A DNA stretch of 63,886 bases, counting the filler, from Parasitella parasitica NRRL 2501 (taxonomy: Eukaryota > Fungi > Mucoromycota): the NCBI GenBank assembly GCA_025201805.1. It is 6 parts of 6 records of this genome, joined end to end, with 100 filler letters (N's around TTAATTAATTAA, not from the genome) between each part and the next. Parts side by side here need not be neighbours in the genome. Positions count along the whole stretch, not along the records: positions 59,225 to 61,418 come from MU619311.1; 5 more parts are not named here. One strand, 5' to 3'. Below the pieces are notes generated by a model. The model was not told the DNA's origin. It made no database searches and worked only from the letters and a program-made list of their open reading frames with translations. The translations under genes and the position numbers were made by a program. Of this stretch, positions 4,183 to 61,418 are shown in pieces. How positions within the stretch are numbered: the first letter of the stretch is position 1; each line of letters begins with the position of its first letter.

Positions 4183-6187
4183 ATGCCTCGCTTACAAACA
4201 CATACAGTTGAAGGTACGATTTCGTGATATAGGACACATGGCATCGTTCTTTTGTAGCTTAGTCGTTTGTTCCCACTAGGATATTCGTATCTGAAAAAGC
4301 CTACGCTGCTGGGATCAATGGCATTGTACCTCAAGAGTCAATTAGTATGGCCAGACGTCCTTCGATGGAGAGGATCCGTAAGTATCATATTCATGGGCTA
4401 GTGCCAATTAAGGCGAGAAAGCTCACACGGAATAAAAAAGGTTCTGTTGCCTACGTTACCCGGCGTGATTGGGATGACAGGATTTTCATGTCTAGTATGC
4501 CTCTTTCATCTCACCTTTGAAATACCCATTAGCGTGCCTGTATCTGTCTGTAAGTTAGATCAGATTTTGATTGATTATACAACGCCAACTGACGTAAACA
4601 AAGTGGGAACTGTCTCTGTGGCATTAGGCTTGCTGTTAGCATTTCGTGTAAACACAGCATATGATAGATACTGGGAAGGCAGAAAGCTGATTCAAACGGT
4701 AACTGCTACTATCAGAAACGTAGCTCGCCAAGTCTGGATCAATATCCCAGAGGAAACTGAGCAGGATCATCTGGAGAAAATGCGCTGCGTGAAGCTATTG
4801 CTGGCTTTTTTTGTGGCTACAAAGCATCACCTCCGTCATGAATACGGCACAAACTATTACGACTGTAAGATTTATAAAAAGATATAGCAAATGCAGTGAT
4901 ACAGACTTACACGCCTACTTGTTACGATAGTGGAAGTGTTATTGCCGCCAAAGTGGGAGCCTGCGAGTTCTGCAAAAAGAAACCAGGCGCAAACACTGCA
5001 GGGACAGAACACGAGAAAAACGACAACAATGAACATCAAACTAAATGACACTGCAGAGCTAGCAACAGGAAGCAGTACATCGGTCGACGGACATACCTCG
5101 CCCAAGAAAAGAAGAGAGTTTCACATACTCGATAAAGCGCCTGCCATTGTGGTATCCCTGACTGATTCCATCAAGCCCAAGCAGCATGGTTGTTACATGG
5201 AATCGGATGATCCTACAAGCATCTCCAATGTTCGCCGCTCCTTGATCCAGCAAGAGTTTCCAAACTCTGACTTTGTCCAGGCATCTACTGCACAGATCAA
5301 GAGCTCTATGACAGGCGCCGACCTTGAGCAGACCATTTCAGACGAAGAGGAGCAACAAGTGAGCAGACTGCTGGACGAGGCTGTCAACCTACCTCCCACT
5401 TCTGCCGTTCCCGACTCTCCAAGGCCAGATGGAAATAGAGCCGATAGCAGGTTTAAGAATGCCACTCTCGCCAAAATGGGGTCCCACACACAGGCAGATT
5501 TGCATTCCATCAAGCACCGTATTCGTAACCAACACCAAAAGTTTAGAAAGAGACGTCTGGACCACTCTGAGTTTACTAGCGAAGAAGATTTACCGTATCA
5601 AGGCGACTCTGACCTATCTCTTCCCCTGGAAATCCTGTTCCGCGTGGCCTTGTACATCAATCAAGCAAAGGCAGCCAACAAGATTGAATCGACGCTCGTG
5701 TCGGTCACCACCAGCTCCATTGATATCCTTGTCAACTCGCTCACTGCATTTGAGAGAATTGTGCATACGCCAATCCCCAAAGCATACAACATTCATTTGT
5801 AAGGCTCGGACGCAGTTTGCACGCAGGAGCACTAACATTAATTGAAAACGCATTTTAGGAAACAAGCTGTTGTACTGTACATCTTTTTTCTGCCATTTGC
5901 ATTGGTGGACTCGTTGGCTTGGATTGTGGCACCCGTTGTTGCTCTCGTCTCATTCACATTGTTTGGCATTGAAGCCATTGGTGCGGAAATCGAGAATCCT
6001 TGTAAGTTGTGCTCTTTGCTGCGTGTAATTTACATACTCACCCCCTTTCCTTGAATGCATCATAGTTGGCTACGATGATAATGACTTGCCCTTGAATAGA
6101 TACTGCGATGAACTGAAAAAAGAAGTTGAATACATCATTTATCACATCCCCACTCAATCAACAAGTATTCTGCTGGATGGTCAATAA
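4183..6187 (+). CDS. Bestrophin-like (UPF0187/YneE-type) anion channel, multi-exon
   Basis: Motifs RWRGSV, LLAFRVNTAYDRYWEGRK, FERIVHTPIPKAY, GIEAIGAEIENPFGYDDNDLPL, joined by GT-AG introns. Confidence 0.9.
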
Positions 6188-7957: not shown

Positions 7958-8188
7958 GGTTGTCGCTTTGGAAGAGGAAGCCAGTGAAAAATGTTGCCAA
8001 CAGCTTGTTGGGGATTGAGAAATGAGGAATACCTGTCACGGCTGCGAAAGCTGGCAAATCAACCAAACATGCACACCGCGTTGGCTGATTTGCTATTTTG
8101 CTGTTTTGCTGTTGTGCTTTTTTTCCTTCTCTTTTTGATTGCTTTTCACCTTCAAACCACCAAGATTGGGAAATAAAGACAAAAAACA

Positions 8189-11093
8189 ATGGAGGACATC
8201 AACGACTACTGGCTAGACTGTCTTGCCAAGCATTCTATCTTTGAGCTGGATGCTGCTGAACAGCAGATTTCTCAAGCCATCAAATCAAAACAGACACGCC
8301 AAGACAACAGCATTGTAAACTTTCTTCTGCAGCACCACACCCGTGTTATCACAATCAGAGACAACGATCTCTTTGTAGCTATAGGCTCGCAAATCAGAGT
8401 GCTCAACTTGGCAAACTTCAAGGATAACTGGCTAAAGGCCCACAAAGAAGCAAATGCAGGCAGCACTGATTTACAAGACAGCTGGATTTTATCCACTCCA
8501 TACAAGGTAAACCAGAGAGCCTTCAGGAGGCACACACACACACACAGAGAACTGACACTTGCAAACAGATCCTAGACACGCCTGAAATCAACTACAATAT
8601 CGTATCACTGACCCCCAACAACAATGGCCGTCTCTTAGCAGTCTGTGGTGAGCATCGCCTGGAGATCGTATGCTTACCTAGACAAGCTTTTTCTGACTAC
8701 GCTTCTTCCGGCATAATCCCCAGGAGGGAGGTGGATTGTCGCACTCTATCCGTTATACACTCCAAATCCAGAGCCGATATCCTCAAGATTGAGTGGCATC
8801 CTCTCAGTGAAACGCACACGCACATCGTTATCCTCGGAAACGACAATATGCTGAGGTAAGAAGCATCTCTATTGACATGAGTGCAATGCATTAAACCGTT
8901 GTAAATGTGCGACTAGAATCTTTGATGTCAGCAATGATATCGAGAACCCAGAGCAATCCTTTGATTTATCACCGCTGGAACAGAAGCCATCGACCACCCC
9001 ACCTATCCAACGCATTGGATTCTCAATTGATGACGATTCCGACAATTCAGATGAAGATGTTGTAACCTTTACACTGGGTGGACCCAGCAAAGACAAAAGC
9101 GGTTGGGAGCCATTCACAGTATTTTACGCTCTTCGTGGTGGCCATATTTACTCGCTTTGTCCTGTCATTCCATTCAGAAGCATCGTCCGCCGCAGCCATT
9201 TGGATAATCTCGCTTGCATTGTCGACGTCAAATACCAACAGGCCAAGTCTTCAGAAAAGCATGATTTCAAAACGCTCTCTCATCTGTTCAACCTTCAAAG
9301 TGCTTGGATTGACGATTTGTTCCAGACTGCAAAGATTGCTCGCAGATCGAATGATAGCGATAGCTTGGTCGTCGTGAGCGATGAGCAGCATAGCCGGTAT
9401 CCTACTCTGAGACAGGGCCCTTTTCTTATCAGTCATACTCAACCCCTTGATAATGGCATCGAGGCTTCGGATCTCCTGTTCATCAATCCTGAGCCTGTAC
9501 GTGTCCTTGCTTTGGGATTAACTGATGGATCTGTTCACAACTACTTGCTCAGTGGCGAAGTTGACGCTCAATGGCAAATGCCCGTATCAAGTGCTACTCA
9601 CTCCTGGCAAAAAGAGGTAATTGCGTATTTTTTTTTATATATATATTTATACATATATATAAATTTATGCTAAAACTATCCAGTTGGGTATCCTGTTATC
9701 CGAATCGGCTTGCCTTCCCAAGGCTTCTTTGTACGAGGTTATCAATCTAAAGAGTCAAGAACTGCCCAGATACCAGACTGTCACCTTTGTCTCTGATCCC
9801 TTGTACAAAGACACTTTTTTTATTTATCATGCTGCTGGTGTCCATGCTGTGGCTATGGGCACATGGATCCAACCTCTCCGTGATGCCATTCTCAAATACG
9901 AATCAGGAAACAATTCCGAATCGAAACGTGTTCTTGATGGTTTGTTGAAAGAAAAGAGCAAGTCTGAGGTGAGGTCCCTTGTCAATGCTTCTCCATTCAA
10001 AGATGCGTTTGTCCCTATCATCGGCTTGGTGTTGACCTCAGACATTTACCTGTCTTACTCGCTCTTGGCTTTAACTAGTGAATACAGACTGGTAACGAGA
10101 GACTTGAATATGCGTCGTGAAGTGGATATTCCCGAAGAAGCCGAAAAGGCTGTTAAAGCTCAATTACACGACATTGGTACTGAAGAAGACGAGAGGGAGA
10201 AGGGATACGAGCCCATTTTATCTCTGCCCCTCTTTAAACCTCCTCCACAGCTCGATACTTTGCCAAAGCAACCAAAAATTGTGGTTCCCTCTGCCATGAG
10301 CGGCCCTCAAGAAATCGTAATCAACGAAGAAACCCTTCGCTTCATTTCCAAATCCACAGAGCAGATTCGTCGCGAAACTCGTGATTTAAAAAAGGCAGCT
10401 TCGCACATTGACAGCAGGTAAATAATAGTCGATCAGCGTAGCTCAGATGGGAAGCCGATCTCGGCAACTAACTATATCGTTAACCTAGATTGTGCACTCA
10501 ACAAAAGGAATTCGAGCGACAGGTGAACGCAGTGCGAGATCTGTATTTCAAGCTGCAAGAAACCAATTCTAAAGAGGCCAAACAAGCGCAGGAACAGAAA
10601 TTAAGGGACATTTCTCAAAGACACGCCAAATTGCGTTTACGAATTGATGAACAGTTACGCAGTTTGATGAAGACGTATCAGCCGGAACTGTCAAATGAGG
10701 AAAAGGACTGGATTGAAAAACTGGAGAAGCTTGCAAAGCAAGTTTCAGGAGAGTCTGGTTATGTCGCTAGAATCGAATTGGTGAGTGTTTTATCAGGTAG
10801 TCTGTATACCAGATAGCTAAGACAATTTCATCCTAGTTGAAGGAGCAAGTTGAACGGCAAACCAGAGTAACCAAGCCAAAGGCACACAAATTTGCTGACA
10901 TGAATCCCTCTCAGCTCAAGAGTATCCTCAGCACATTGAAGCAGCAGTAAGTTTTGATATCATCAATCCAGACAAAAAAAAAAAAAAAAATTTTTTTTTC
11001 AACATATTGACATTCATCTGTAGATCTTCTGATATTGCGCATGTAACTGAAAGAATGGAGAGGCTTGAAGTCAAGTTGCCTACTTCTGCCTAA
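8189..11093 (+). CDS. NUP82: Nucleoporin Nup82/Nup88, multi-exon
   Basis: Propeller region with KIEWHPLSETHTHIVIL, GWEPFTVFYALRGGHIYSLCPVIP and LRQGPFL; C-terminal coiled coil with LSNEEKDWIEKL. Confidence 0.85.
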
Positions 11094-12001
11094 TTCATCG
11101 CCTGTAATTTCTTCCCTTCGTCTTTCTTTAAAGAAACAACATATTTCTGTCAATAACAATAGGTGAATATAAATAAATATACTCTGCATCTCACTTTTTT
11201 CATGTTGAATCTTGATGTACGTAACCATATTACTCGTCTTTACAGAGATCTTTAAAGTGAGATGGTGCATTACTGAAGTGAACTTACCAAAGCGCTATTG
11301 CAGATTGACTGGGTCATGTAGCTTTTTTTTTTTTTTTTTTTTTTCATGTTTCTTTTTGATTTGACGGTATTGGTTTCCTTCCCAAATGTGGCAGGAGATA
11401 GCCATTTAGGCTGATATTCTCACAGACGTTTTTTCCCAGAGCAAAAGGTGCATCATTGTGGAGCATGGCAATGCAATGGTAACTGTTTCAAATAAAACTA
11501 GTTTGGAATTTAATTAATGAATGCGTGCATGCACCGTAGGCGTGAATTCATCCGATCTCCTGGAACTTCAAGTCAATCAGGCAACCTGCATTGGCATACC
11601 TGTATGACAGGAGACAGGACTATTAAATCCCAGTGATTGATACGGTACACACGGAAGGTGACGTACTAGCACAACAAATAACAAGTTGAAAGAGTGGCAT
11701 CTGGTCTTGTTTCCTTTTCTTCTTTGTACAACTACACCTGTATAAAAAAAAAAAAAAAAAAAAAAAAGAAAAGATTAAGAGATCATCACTGGATTTCTTG
11801 TTTTTGCTGTAAATAGCGTTGCATGTTTTGTTGATGTTTTGTATTCTAGCATTGTTGTTATAAATAGCTGTATTTACAGTGAGTTGCAAGATGCTGAATG
11901 TTGGGATTTCGTTAACCTAACCGCTTACAAATCATGTAGACTAATTTTCCCAAAATATTATATATTTCACCGAGAAGAATTCACAACAGAAAAATAATCA
12001 A

Positions 12002-13299
12002 ATGGTAAATTGAAAGACAAAGGACAGTGACAATGGCAATGGCACAAACGAGATTCCCTTCTTAGAGCGTATATACCCAAGACGTCAAAATCATATGTCA
12101 AAACCATGTATTAAAGTCAACCGCAAAAGCTTCAGAGGGCCATCCTTGGAGAAATTGGAAGATCAGGGTTGTAGCTGTAGATAATAATCGAGAAAAAAAG
12201 GGCAAGCTGAACCATCTTTTGGATCACGTAGAATATTGGTTGCATCCAACATTTGTGAACCCTGTTAGAGGTAGGTTAGGCCAGCAATGCCAAACACAAC
12301 AACGTCTAATCTTTGCAGGGTAGACTTCAAAAAGGAGCCTTATTTACTGCAAGAAAAAGGCTGGGGAGAGTTTGATATGCGTGTCATCTTGTACTTTAAG
12401 GACTCTCTGCTTGAGCCTGATCCGGAGGAGATCCTTTTTGATTTGCATTTTCGCGAGCCCATCTATACCATCAAGCACACAATCATCTTTAATAATCCTT
12501 CGCCCGAACTGATACGCATTCTGCAAATGGAACTTCCCACGAGCGATCTGCAAACCACGATTCATATCGATAATAGAAAACGGCGCACAAGCCCGACTAT
12601 GTCGACATCCAAAAAGATCAAGACGCCACCGTCCATGTCCTCACCGGCAGACGGTGGCCCACTGCCGCCAGCTGCTGCTTCCAACAACAATAGCATCCGA
12701 TACCCTACGTCGCCATCGTCGAGCATGATGCTTTATCTACATGACCATGACTCGAGTGCGGAATCCGATGACTTGTATCGAACAGTGCATGGTTACAGAC
12801 GACAAAAGAGGACGGTTAACCAGGACGGGGTCACCATAGACGATATTTACAACGAAACAGACATTGAAAATGCCAGCAGCATTCATACAAAACAATTGGA
12901 CGACCATCTTCGAAAGGCCTGGGGAATACCAATGGTAAGTATAACGCTTGTTGGTTTCGCTTTGCTCTAAAAAGTACAGCAGGGAGTGGACATGTTGGAA
13001 TTAGCGAAACAGTTGACGCTTTTGACACCCGAGCAAATAGAGGAAGTCGAGGCTTTGATCCTCAAGGGCAAAAATGATAACACGGTGGTAGAAGACAATG
13101 AAGGTAAACACAGACATATATTGCGCGCAAATGCTTGTGAATGCTAACACAAAAGACAGACGAGTTTATGTTTGATTTGTATTCATTAGGGCCTGAATTA
13201 CTGAGCCAACTGTGGGATTATACAGTCGAAAAGCAATCGCAGCAAAAAGCAACCGCATTGTCACCATTTTCATTAGTTCAGGCCAACGCCAATATGTAG
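12002..13299 (+). CDS. YEATS-domain protein, Taf14/AF9-like, with C-terminal ET-like domain
   Basis: Spliced: VEYWLHPTFVNPVR..FKKEPYLLQEKGWGEFDMRV (YEATS); C-terminal EFMFDLYSLGPELLSQLWDY. Confidence 0.85.
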
Positions 13300-58577: not shown

Positions 58578-59241
58578 AAGCTAAAATTTTCATTCATGCT
58601 AAAGCGGTCAAGATTTTCTTACTAGGATGTCAGGAAGCTCTACCTCAATTTTCCATAGAGTTACGGTGTCTTCAAAATTAAGCCATCTTGAAGATGTTCT
58701 TACCCAGAACATCCAAGTGCTCAAATGCGATCTTTTTTAGTTTGCATTTTTCGAGTATGCGTTTTTCTTTTGTGCAAATATAGTTTAAACCGGACCAAAG
58801 TGTGCAATTTACACGGTAGCTATAGTGCCCATTTTAATTTGCTTACCTGTGTTAACACAGCCTAATTTTTATACAGTGAACTATCATTCTCATTTACACT
58901 CTTGTTGTACCTGTTAGCCTAGCTGGGTTTCAGGCATTACATCAAGCATCACTATATACAAAACATCATGTTTGCGTAAGATTGATCTCTGTTTTCTTTT
59001 TTCTCTACGCTAAATTTTTTTTTACACATATGTAATGCTACTACCTATATAAAGTTCGACTAGTTTCTTATTTTGAGGTGTCTTGATAGCACTTGCAATT
59101 TATATCAAAAGAGATTTGGAATTGNNNNNNNNNNNNNNNNNNNNNNNNNNNNNNNNNNNNNNNNNNNNTTAATTAATTAANNNNNNNNNNNNNNNNNNNN
59201 NNNNNNNNNNNNNNNNNNNNNNNNAAAAAAAAAAAAAAAGG

Positions 59242-61418
59242 CAGTGCGTACCAGGTACGCAAGCCAAAAAAAAAAAGAGTCAGTATGCGTACCAGGTTTC
59301 AAATTCCGATGTTTGTTTCTGTGGAGATGCAGAAGAGCACCTTCATTTTTCTTTTCTTTTCGTTACGACACAAGTTGACATGGCAACATCAAGAACTTGC
59401 GAAAAATGCAATCGATCTTTTAAAAGTTCACTACCAAGTCATGAAAAAAACTATCACACACCTTCTATTACAGCAAAATACACAGATAGTCAAGGTGTGT
59501 ACTATTTTTCTTATCGTTTTCTTTAATGTTATTCATTTCTTTTTTCACCTTGGTTTAGGCCAATCAGTCGTGCTTGTTTTGGTGCGAGATGAGGATTCTG
59601 GCAAATTTAAATGTCCAATGTGCAAAAAATCTTGGCATACTTGTTCTGGCGCCCATAGTCATTTTGCTCGTATTGATGGGAAATGTAGTGATGATGGTAA
59701 GAAGAAACGAATATAATTTACCAGCTCTTTCAAATTAAACTTTTTGATGTTTTAAATAAAGATGATTCATCAAGCGGAAGCGAAATTGAAGATAGTACCA
59801 CTGCAATCATCGAAATGCACACCACAAAATTAGTTACTATCTCTGATGAATCCAATGATTGCCCTCGACGAAGCTTTGATGAGTCTATTTTGCGTGCTTT
59901 TCGACAGTCAGCGGCTTCTGATTATGAAAAAAACAAAACTCTGTGGATTGCTGAGAGTTTGAAACTGCAACCGTTTGCGTTGACGGATAACAATCAAGTT
60001 GAGGAAATCGCTCTCATGCATTGCGACAATGTTGCATCCTTAGTAAACAAAAGTCAAGACCAGCCCTATCGCGTAAAGAATATCACATTCGGCAAGAAGC
60101 GCAGGTGGGATAGCAGTATTAAGTTGAATGATGAAGCATCAGCCACGAATATTGAAGCAGCCCTATTGTCCATCATACACTATGGACCTTACTCCCACCA
60201 ACTCTCGAAAAGAGGTTTTACGCAATTGAATGATGATGGTTGCCAACTCTTGAACGACGATTGGACATCCTTGCCACAATTGCGATTTGCCTGCGCCCAG
60301 CTACTTGCTGGTGCTATTATCATCAATAAGAACAACGAAGCCGTGCTTGTCAATACGGTGGAAATCTACAATCGACAACGAGCACTTGACGTCCATCGAG
60401 AAACGTTTGTTAATAAGAAGGGAATGGCAGCATTGTCATCTTTGCCACCCATAGACACCAAATATTACAACACATGGGTAACAATCATGGGAGATACCGA
60501 CGGCAGTAAGCTAGTTGTGGGGACCAAGACTTTAAATGCCCTCATCACTTCAAGCCTCCGAATTGATTCTGTTCATCAAGCGAGTATTGGGGGAGTCATT
60601 TCACATTTCGACTTGGATGATAGCACCGCTTTGACGACTTCGGTATTCTTGGATAATGAATCGATTGAAAAAGCGAACATATTGGCAAGTGATCCTAATG
60701 CAAGCAAGATAAATCGCTTTGATCTACGATACCAACTTCGACAATTGCGATCGAAATTTCAATACCCTTCAACCTACCTCCTCTGTCGTGCATCAAGCGT
60801 TTTTGCAAATGATCTGCGATCACAGCCATATACCATTTTCACATTATATGAAGCACCTGATACAGGCCGCGATTCGGCAACAAAAATGGCCTCCAAACTT
60901 TTTTATAATGTCGCTAATCTGGTCCATTCCAGCACTAATCCGACTCTTCCAAAGCAATATGTAAACACTCTATTTGTGAAATGCCAAGATGGTCAAATTA
61001 AATCTATCTTACAACAAATCCTTGACTTATACGATGAAGATAAATATACCATCAACATATTGGACAATCATTCTCTCAATGCGCTACTATCACTTTTGGC
61101 TTCCTTGATGTCAGCAAGTCTCGTTTCAGCAAACAAATCTGTGGCAGAAAATGTCAAGTCGCGCGTCCTAAACGGTCATTAATAAATCCTTGTATCCCCT
61201 GTTACTTTTTTTTATTTCAAAGCTGGCACAATCACTGTTCGCTGCCCTGTTTTCATTTTAAGGCTACCTCTCTTTTTTATTTGTTTGACAGTTCGTCACC
61301 AATAAATTTCAAGCATTGTTAAAAAGAAAAAAACAATCGAATGCAACATACTACTATTATTTTTTTTTAAACAAACATGGCCATTTTTTTTTGGCTTGCG
61401 TACCTGGTACGCACACTG
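59242..61418. mobile_element. TIR-bounded 2.2-kb unit occupying a whole contig
   Basis: 31-bp inverted repeat GTGCGTACCAGGTACGCAAGCCA9 at 59244-59274 and 61384-61414; right end terminates ...CACTG; third partial copy CAGTATGCGTACCAGG at 59281. Confidence 0.75.
59380..61182 (+). CDS. Zinc-finger + unknown-domain protein (3 exons) inside the TIR unit
   Basis: Exon 1 MATSRTCEKCNRSFKSSLPSHEKNYH; exon 2 KFKCPMCKKSWHTCSGAHSH; both joined by GT-AG introns to the intact exon containing ORF 59815..61182 (455 aa). Confidence 0.8.

Follow-up and report, generated by a model that had tools for sequence, protein, structure and literature searches.

A low-copy gene unit of Mucorales with inverted ends, possibly mobile, that encodes zinc fingers and a predicted AAG-like domain

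Results

A gene between inverted repeats in Parasitella parasitica

Record MU619311.1 of Parasitella parasitica NRRL 2501 (NCBI GenBank assembly GCA_025201805.1) makes up positions 59225-61418 of the window, i.e. the whole stretch of 63,886 nucleotides (nt) under analysis, in which six parts of six records are joined by filler letters. This piece, which begins with a run of 15 A and ends 4 nt past its right repeat, holds a single gene between inverted repeats. With moderate confidence, we interpret it as one copy of a selfish gene unit that occurs in Mucorales at low copy number, is mobile or has been transferred horizontally, and encodes a finger protein that would bind its terminal repeats. 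As a mobile, selfish gene it seems to be of a kind not yet described, and a literature search returned nothing on this family or element. As we picture it, the unit is one gene bounded by inverted sets of TGCGTWCC half-sites embedded in A/T runs. From the N-terminus, its protein would comprise a pair of C2H2 fingers, a small region of alpha/beta structure, a domain folded like alkyladenine DNA glycosylase (AAG) and, at the C-terminus, a helical bundle. The fingers would bind half-sites at the ends and in the promoter of their own unit, and the AAG-like domain, in which a Glu-x-Tyr...Tyr signature is kept at the spacing of the AAG active site, may flip or excise a DNA base.

The two arms of the inverted repeat, each 31 nt long, are 100% complementary. 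As assessed in 200 dinucleotide-preserving shuffles, in which the longest inverted repeat had a mean length of 10.9 nt and a maximum of 13 nt, the repeat is real and far above chance. Its core is a 17-nt palindrome, TGCGTACC-A/T-GGTACGCA, with AGCC and then an A-run on its inner flank. A third, half-length copy of the core is equal to the right end at 16 of 17 positions. An earlier note on this DNA, made from the sequence alone, had described both the palindrome-cored inverted repeat and the partial third copy inside the left end, and both descriptions hold. In this piece, the unit's own ends carry only 1-3 core copies.

At both contig edges, the piece probably stops short of the full terminal repeats, because a related contig from the Logan collection (L001) has an extra full core copy outside the equivalent run of 13 A, with 281 nt more of unique sequence to the left. 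A further core copy therefore probably lies past the left edge of the window contig. In Circinella, the inverted repeat reaches ∼30 nt beyond the point where the window contig stops. The earlier note had read the short contig, which the unit fills between two gaps, as a collapsed multicopy repeat. We found no support for this: short-read assemblies would be expected to break at a 31-nt inverted repeat with homopolymer runs, and high copy number does not follow from a short contig. Indeed, 11 independent Logan contigs break inside the palindrome or the T/A runs, in the same place as the window contig. The break reflects the repeat itself, not copy number.

Near-identical copies in other Mucorales families

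In Logan, 11 assemblies encode a 97%-identical protein, each on its own contig of 2.1-2.5 kb. In Circinella umbellata (Lichtheimiaceae), the unit lies within a 983-kb contig, where it has ∼93% DNA identity and a 58-nt inverted repeat (97%) at its ends. This copy is decayed: it contains a stop codon and is interrupted by two insertions, of 402 and 339 nt (L008:9163-9562 and 10080-10414, one of them within exon 3). A 2.5-Mb contig of Chlamydoabsidia padenii (Cunninghamellaceae) contains three copies, one full (A; 90% DNA identity), one partial, and one inverted and 5'-truncated (B), interspersed with arrays of a 236-nt satellite; here the core motif is present as 2-3 variants, upstream only.

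The unit itself is 90-96% identical among L001, Circinella and Chlamydoabsidia, but their flanks are unrelated and the similarity stops at the repeats; between Circinella and Chlamydoabsidia there is no similarity outside them. Introns, at 88-97% identity among window-type copies, are as similar as exons. Cross-family identity of 90-95%, introns included, points to recent transfer, and we infer horizontal transfer between Mucorales families from these comparisons. In a maximum-likelihood tree, at least four near-identical pairs cross family boundaries at 0.10-0.17 substitutions per site, whereas genera within Mortierellaceae are 0.65-1.25 substitutions per site apart in the same tree. The host genes that adjoin the units have their closest counterparts elsewhere at 31% (Circinella) and 50% (Phycomyces) protein identity. 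A viral vector was rejected, IMG/VR holding neither the terminal motif nor close relatives of the protein.

Additional features of the Chlamydoabsidia locus were recorded. The 236-nt arrays (L007:1282-2330, 4625-4905, 5398-6186 and 8079-9127) surround and separate the gene copies, in direct orientation at the intact copy A and inverted at the truncated copy B, and the whole region forms a large imperfect palindrome. Further along, two open reading frames with nearly the same N-terminal peptide (L007:9853-10125, minus strand; 12842-13225, plus strand) lie in opposite orientation ∼3 kb apart, with other reading frames between them; this is possibly another inverted-repeat element adjoining the locus.

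Half-site arrays in Phycomyces and Mucor

The gene of Phycomyces nitens has 73% DNA identity to that in the window. Upstream of it are seven units of 41-54 nt, each with a T-run and GGCT followed by TGCGTTCC-CAC-TGCGTTCC, in an array that stops ∼20 nt short of the start codon. An inverted set of three such units lies ∼0.9 kb downstream, and an additional 34-nt inverted repeat lies outside both arrays. This copy has a 4-nt frameshift. Between the downstream array and the outer repeat, a segment of ∼320 nt (L011:8881-9200) has an inverted repeat of its own, GGGGATTAAACCCAGATA / TATCTGGGTTTAATCCCC, and looks like the insertion of a miniature inverted-repeat transposable element (MITE).

Mucor velutinosus has an array of the Phycomyces type, with CTGCGTTCC at 11-nt spacing. 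Its gene, truncated at the 5' end, occupies the middle of a palindrome (3.6 kb, 99.9% identical; L009:4525-8127 / 9089-12691). This inverted duplication and that of Chlamydoabsidia, two independent cases, both have their breakpoint in the 5' portion of the gene. Over 1,450 nt, the copies of Mucor velutinosus and Phycomyces nitens share 92% identity; their synonymous divergence (dS) is 0.19 and the ratio of nonsynonymous to synonymous divergence (dN/dS) is 0.26. Among window-type copies, dS is 0.08-0.14 and dN/dS 0.19-0.39.

Common to all these loci is the 8-mer TGCGTWCC, of which there are up to 14 per flank in the close clade, on the plus strand upstream and on the minus strand downstream. 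Chance would give fewer than 1.1 per locus, and the loci of distant members are essentially free of the motif. It is arranged as a palindrome in the window subclade and as direct repeats spaced by 11 nt, one helical turn, in the Mucor/Phycomyces subclade. A half-site common to both subclades but arranged differently suggests that a single binding module serves each half-site, with no obligate dimer. The earlier proposal that the fingers bind the palindromic cores as a dimer is thus kept in part: the conserved half-site is a putative binding site, but direct repeats elsewhere argue against an obligate dimer. The patterns also suggest that half-site arrays evolve together with the encoded protein. 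The outer parts of the repeats in Circinella and Phycomyces are unrelated to each other.

The idea that repeats and gene form one evolutionary unit is supported by these comparisons, with an inverted-ended unit in Circinella and related inverted arrays in Phycomyces nitens and Mucor velutinosus. Whether homologues are flanked by repeats has a divided answer: those of the close clade (Circinella, Phycomyces and Mucor velutinosus) are, but most distant members have upstream arrays only.

The encoded protein has two C2H2 fingers and a predicted AAG-like domain

The window gene is intact, with three exons separated by GT..AG introns, and a full-length homologue (P0005) is collinear with all three, which bears out the earlier gene model. 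Exons were translated and searched one by one rather than as a spliced protein. No Pfam family scored above cutoff for any of them, and both fingers fell below cutoff as single sequences. On the other hand, a profile of the family, built from a 59-member alignment (A1), matches the fingers of TFIIIA and CTCF (E 2.6e-8), and 16 of the 59 members match zf-C2H2_4. By sequence, therefore, the two N-terminal C2H2 fingers are weak as single sequences and clear at the family level, in line with the two zinc-finger-like exons noticed earlier.

Relatives of the exon 3 product (to which all residue numbers refer) number 44 in a word-indexed collection, those with names all coming from Mucorales or Mortierellales; an exhaustive search gave 746 clusters at 50% identity. 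The most conserved motif in the 59-member alignment is NTVExYGRxxxxDxHRE, in which E200 and D209 are invariant; Y202, R204, H211, E213, Y234, R266 and D268 are conserved in at least 90% of members.

An AlphaFold2 model made with the family alignment has a mean predicted local distance difference test (pLDDT) score of 89.8. Foldseek, which the earlier note had proposed for the large domain, ranked AAG entries at the top for the whole model (probability up to 0.90), and for the domain alone all nine top matches were AAG (probability 0.69-0.95). In the tier after AAG, the VIA search with the domain alone returned the C-terminal domains of ArnA, methionyl-tRNA formyltransferase and FDH, which belong to the fold class of AAG. 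AAG was the only match that stood out in the fold searches, which also gave generic helical bundles. On the strength of the model, the large domain is predicted to have an AAG-like glycosylase fold. Residues 38-140, which precede this domain, and the helical bundle gave no specific structural match. A feature search of the ESM Atlas gave only sub-threshold matches.

In AAG, Glu125 is the catalytic base, whereas Tyr127 and Tyr159 position the flipped base (review PMC12347255). E200, Y202 and Y234 have the same spacing (+2, +32) as these three residues, an equivalence drawn from spacing. The match is suggestive of AAG-type active-site residues. R266 is a candidate equivalent of AAG Arg182, although this is uncertain.

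No RNase-H-like/DDE, HUH, tyrosine or serine recombinase or Cas1 domain was found by Pfam, NCBIfam, PDB-sequence and fold searches. A known transposase was therefore rejected, the fold searches yielding only AAG and generic helical bundles. The clear match to a known transposase fold that would have removed the novelty, according to the earlier note, did not emerge. That note had also called the region an orphan domain; it indeed shows no known transposase fold, but its predicted fold is recognisable and AAG-like. Matches to DDE_1 and DDE_3 in two family proteins, P0039 and P0007 (Rhizopus delemar), were set aside as partial fragments of neighbouring transposons fused into the gene models; because they are partial and come from two different families, these fusions are probably annotation chimeras.

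Two side observations concern the protein. Among viral structures in BFVD, the whole model is best matched by two uncharacterised proteins of giant viruses, A0A3G5A9Y1 (Hyperionvirus; probability 0.97, E 1.6e-3) and A0A1V0SB56 (Catovirus; probability 0.63). A basic KKRR stretch (window 60100-60114) falls within a loop of low model confidence (residues 112-123) that separates the N-terminal region from the AAG-like domain, and could be a nuclear localisation signal.

Distant members of the family

Distant members, at 33-43% identity, were located in Hesseltinella, Syncephalastrum, Linnemannia, Mortierella and Cunninghamella. Their neighbours include genes for a GCN2-like kinase and a RabGAP (Hesseltinella), Rad52 and Epg5 (Syncephalastrum) and a Na/H exchanger (Linnemannia). 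The upstream arrays are made of 21-nt units in Linnemannia and Mortierella, and of a 12-nt unit of T-run and GATTG in Cunninghamella. Judging from these sequences, much of the family seems to have lineage-specific sites arrayed upstream of the gene, and the downstream inverted copy is specific to the window's clade. The Rhizopus locus (L041-L043) lies between remnants of pogo-like and Tc1-like transposons.

The features of the window piece and the upstream arrays of distant members are listed in Table 1. No Rfam families or tRNAs were found in the piece.

Table 1. Coordinates of the unit's features in the window (first ten rows) and of arrays at the loci of distant members (last row)
Feature	Position	Strand	Evidence
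A15 run, left contig edge	59225..59239	none	resembles A-run spacers separating core copies
Left arm of 31-nt inverted repeat: core 59245-59261, then AGCC and A-run	59244..59274	+	100% complementarity; shuffle maximum 13 nt
Third partial core copy, single TGCGTACC half-site at 59286-59293	59281..59297	+	repeat match and half-site map
Exon 1: start codon and first C2H2-like finger	59380..59494	+	translation, alignment with homologue P0005, family-level C2H2 evidence
Exon 2: second C2H2-like finger	59559..59696	+	translation, profile search, P0005 alignment
Exon 3: 472 codons and stop, conserved family domain	59762..61182	+	translation, homologue searches, P0005 alignment
Predicted AAG-like domain (alkyladenine DNA glycosylase fold), residues 151-364	60214..60855	+	
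Motif NTVExYGRxxxxDxHRE, candidate active site	60352..60402	+	conservation; spacing as AAG Glu125/Tyr127
C-terminal helical bundle, residues 365-470	60856..61173	+	no specific structural match
Right arm of 31-nt inverted repeat: T-run, GGCT, core 61397-61413	61384..61414	-	repeat match and shuffles
Upstream-only arrays of distant members	L012:5600-6010; L014:4727-4940; L010:7292-7973; L045:5796-5872		tandem motif arrays

Discussion

The case for a mobile or horizontally transferred unit is built on its ends and its distribution. Terminal inverted repeats are perfect over 31 nt in the window, 97% identical over 58 nt in Circinella, and take the form of inverted arrays with an outer 34-nt repeat in Phycomyces. 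Copies at different sites, with similarity ending at the repeats, were seen between genomes. Intact copies under purifying selection are mixed with decayed or truncated ones, and some copies are embedded in satellite or transposon debris. In a search for an empty site, the neighbour gene of Phycomyces nitens gave no orthologue in P. blakesleeanus, and the Spinellus locus was not syntenic.

Several observations weigh against this interpretation. Target-site duplications, which the earlier note had proposed to look for, are not visible at the outer repeat ends in Circinella (L008 7582/10563) or Phycomyces (L011 5574/9250), and they may have been lost, because both copies are old and decayed. Extra copies seen within one genome are local duplications or palindromes only, the seven Rhizopus contigs with P0039 represent one locus in different strains, and no MITE-like or short deletion derivatives were found in the loci compared. 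The genes around distant members are ordinary host genes, a downstream inverted copy is missing there, and most of these members have arrays of other short motifs on the upstream side only. In Hesseltinella, ∼5.5 copies of a 74-nt unit with the palindrome AAATGTCGAGA-(A/T run)-TCTCGACATTT abut the start codon, and by their position such upstream arrays look promoter-like. The T-run-GGCT-half-site unit points one way with respect to the gene in one subclade and the other way in the other. A metagenome scan for the Mucor/Phycomyces-type array gave 26 loci with no family gene, the arrays being unrelated satellites. As for the fold, TM-scores between AAG and the family are only ∼0.3, and profile searches against Pfam, NCBIfam and PDB sequences, at E values up to 10, gave no link to AAG for the large domain, so the relationship is distant and seen in structure only; the active-site correspondence, too, was drawn from spacing.

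The unrelated satellites, with GGAACGCAGTTGGAACGCA-like repeats, are at L016, L034, L035 and other metagenome loci within L015-L040, where there is no family gene.

That the encoded protein itself moves the unit is a tentative proposal, which we consider unlikely on balance. Its most specific form, to which we assign a somewhat lower probability, is a new class of eukaryotic mobile element whose sole protein, a zinc-finger-targeted AAG-like glycosylase, drives mobility instead of a DDE, HUH or recombinase enzyme. In such an element, the fingers would place the enzyme on the TGCGTWCC end repeats, where excision of bases would leave abasic sites and breaks; as the host repaired these breaks, the unit might be copied, excised or transferred. 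By-products of that damage could include the palindromes and inverted duplications at several loci.

The strongest rival, improbable in our view, is that of an ordinary lineage-specific host gene family, i.e. a DNA-binding protein with an AAG-like repair or base-modification domain whose arrays are its own promoter or autoregulatory sites rather than parts of a transposon; in the window's clade, part of the array would have been duplicated in inverted orientation downstream. Distant members, lying between conserved host genes and lacking flanking inverted repeats, speak for it, as do upstream arrays that run to the start codon in Phycomyces and Hesseltinella, the low copy number, the lack of a visible target-site duplication and a coding sequence under purifying selection. 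It has difficulty, however, with DNA identities of 90-95%, introns included, across Mucorales families at non-homologous loci, where nothing beyond the repeats is similar. Further points against it are the four or more cross-family pairs in the tree that are nearly identical, several pseudogene or truncated copies, and the placement of some copies in satellite or transposon debris.

Less probable still is a non-autonomous element in which the gene is cargo, moved in trans by a conventional transposase that acts at the outer repeat parts, the arrays being only regulatory sites of the cargo. The inverted repeats do extend outward past the half-site arrays into unique sequence, by 28 nt in Circinella and 34 nt in Phycomyces, the encoded protein has no known transposase fold, and pogo-like and Tc1-like remnants adjoin some members. 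But the gene is intact, conserved across genera and under purifying selection, unlike the usual captured gene fragments, and the arrays change along with the gene lineage. Moreover, the outer repeats of Circinella and Phycomyces bear no relation to each other, no partner element was identified, and the DDE fragments in two gene models are partial, from two families, and probably annotation chimeras. Finally, an assembly artefact, i.e. a chimeric or hairpin contig with inverted ends made by the assembler, has a negligible probability: the unit does fill a short contig ending in a palindrome and homopolymer runs, but the same unit and ends recur in the 11 independent Logan assemblies, and copies inside the 983-kb Circinella and 2.5-Mb Chlamydoabsidia contigs refute it.

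What is at stake differs between these readings. The family is large and unannotated, and its core, predicted to have the fold of a base-excision enzyme, is fused to sequence-specific fingers. If the unit moves by its own protein, this would be a new catalytic class for eukaryotic transposition. If it is a host family, it would be a candidate site-specific base-excising or base-reading factor. N6-methyladenine (6mA) is unusually abundant in early-diverging fungi including Mucorales, as reported in PMC11258239, and given that abundance, a host family would be a testable player in epigenetic control. Under either reading, the near-identity across families would document horizontal movement of a eukaryotic gene unit in Mucorales, an order with agents of mucormycosis among its members. 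The unit also offers a compact, defined protein-DNA pair for experiments.

The closest parallels in architecture are class II transposons, which have terminal inverted repeats, and in which subterminal repeats are bound by the transposase, e.g. Ac/Ds of the hAT group and En/Spm of the CACTA group. The unit shares with them inverted ends, short subterminal motifs whose repeats face opposite ways at the left and right ends, a single internal gene whose product has a DNA-binding zinc-finger region at its N-terminus, and a patchy, horizontally incongruent distribution with decaying copies. It differs in having no DDE/RNase-H-like or other known transposase fold, in its very low copy number, and in that neither a target-site duplication nor non-autonomous derivatives were seen.

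Foldback-type elements have long inverted ends built of short tandem repeats. The ends in Phycomyces nitens and Mucor velutinosus are comparable, being arrays of 41-42-nt units, and in Chlamydoabsidia the 236-nt satellite is inverted around one copy; palindromic rearrangements are common at the unit's loci. The window ends, unlike those of Foldback, contain 1-3 core copies only, and in Chlamydoabsidia the arrays that surround intact copy A are in direct orientation, which makes a satellite of the host more likely than ends of an element.

With human AAG/MPG (PDB 1EWN, 3QI5; PF02245), the protein has in common an invariant Glu and two near-invariant Tyr spaced as Glu125, Tyr127 and Tyr159. Unlike AAG/MPG, it has no Pfam or NCBIfam match, the two being 6-12% identical with a TM-score of ∼0.3. 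In the protein, C2H2 fingers, an additional region on the N-terminal side and a helical bundle are joined to the domain, and whereas AAG/MPG is a single-copy repair gene, the window's family is large, fast-evolving and spread over multiple lineages.

A last comparison is with the KDZ transposons of basidiomycetes, which, as Iyer and Aravind reportedly described, carry genes for TET/JBP DNA-base-modifying enzymes. KDZ elements have their own recognisable transposase next to this cargo, whereas the window unit has no separate transposase inside. Common to both is an enzyme family acting, or in our case predicted to act, on DNA bases that has expanded and spread in fungi along with mobile DNA.

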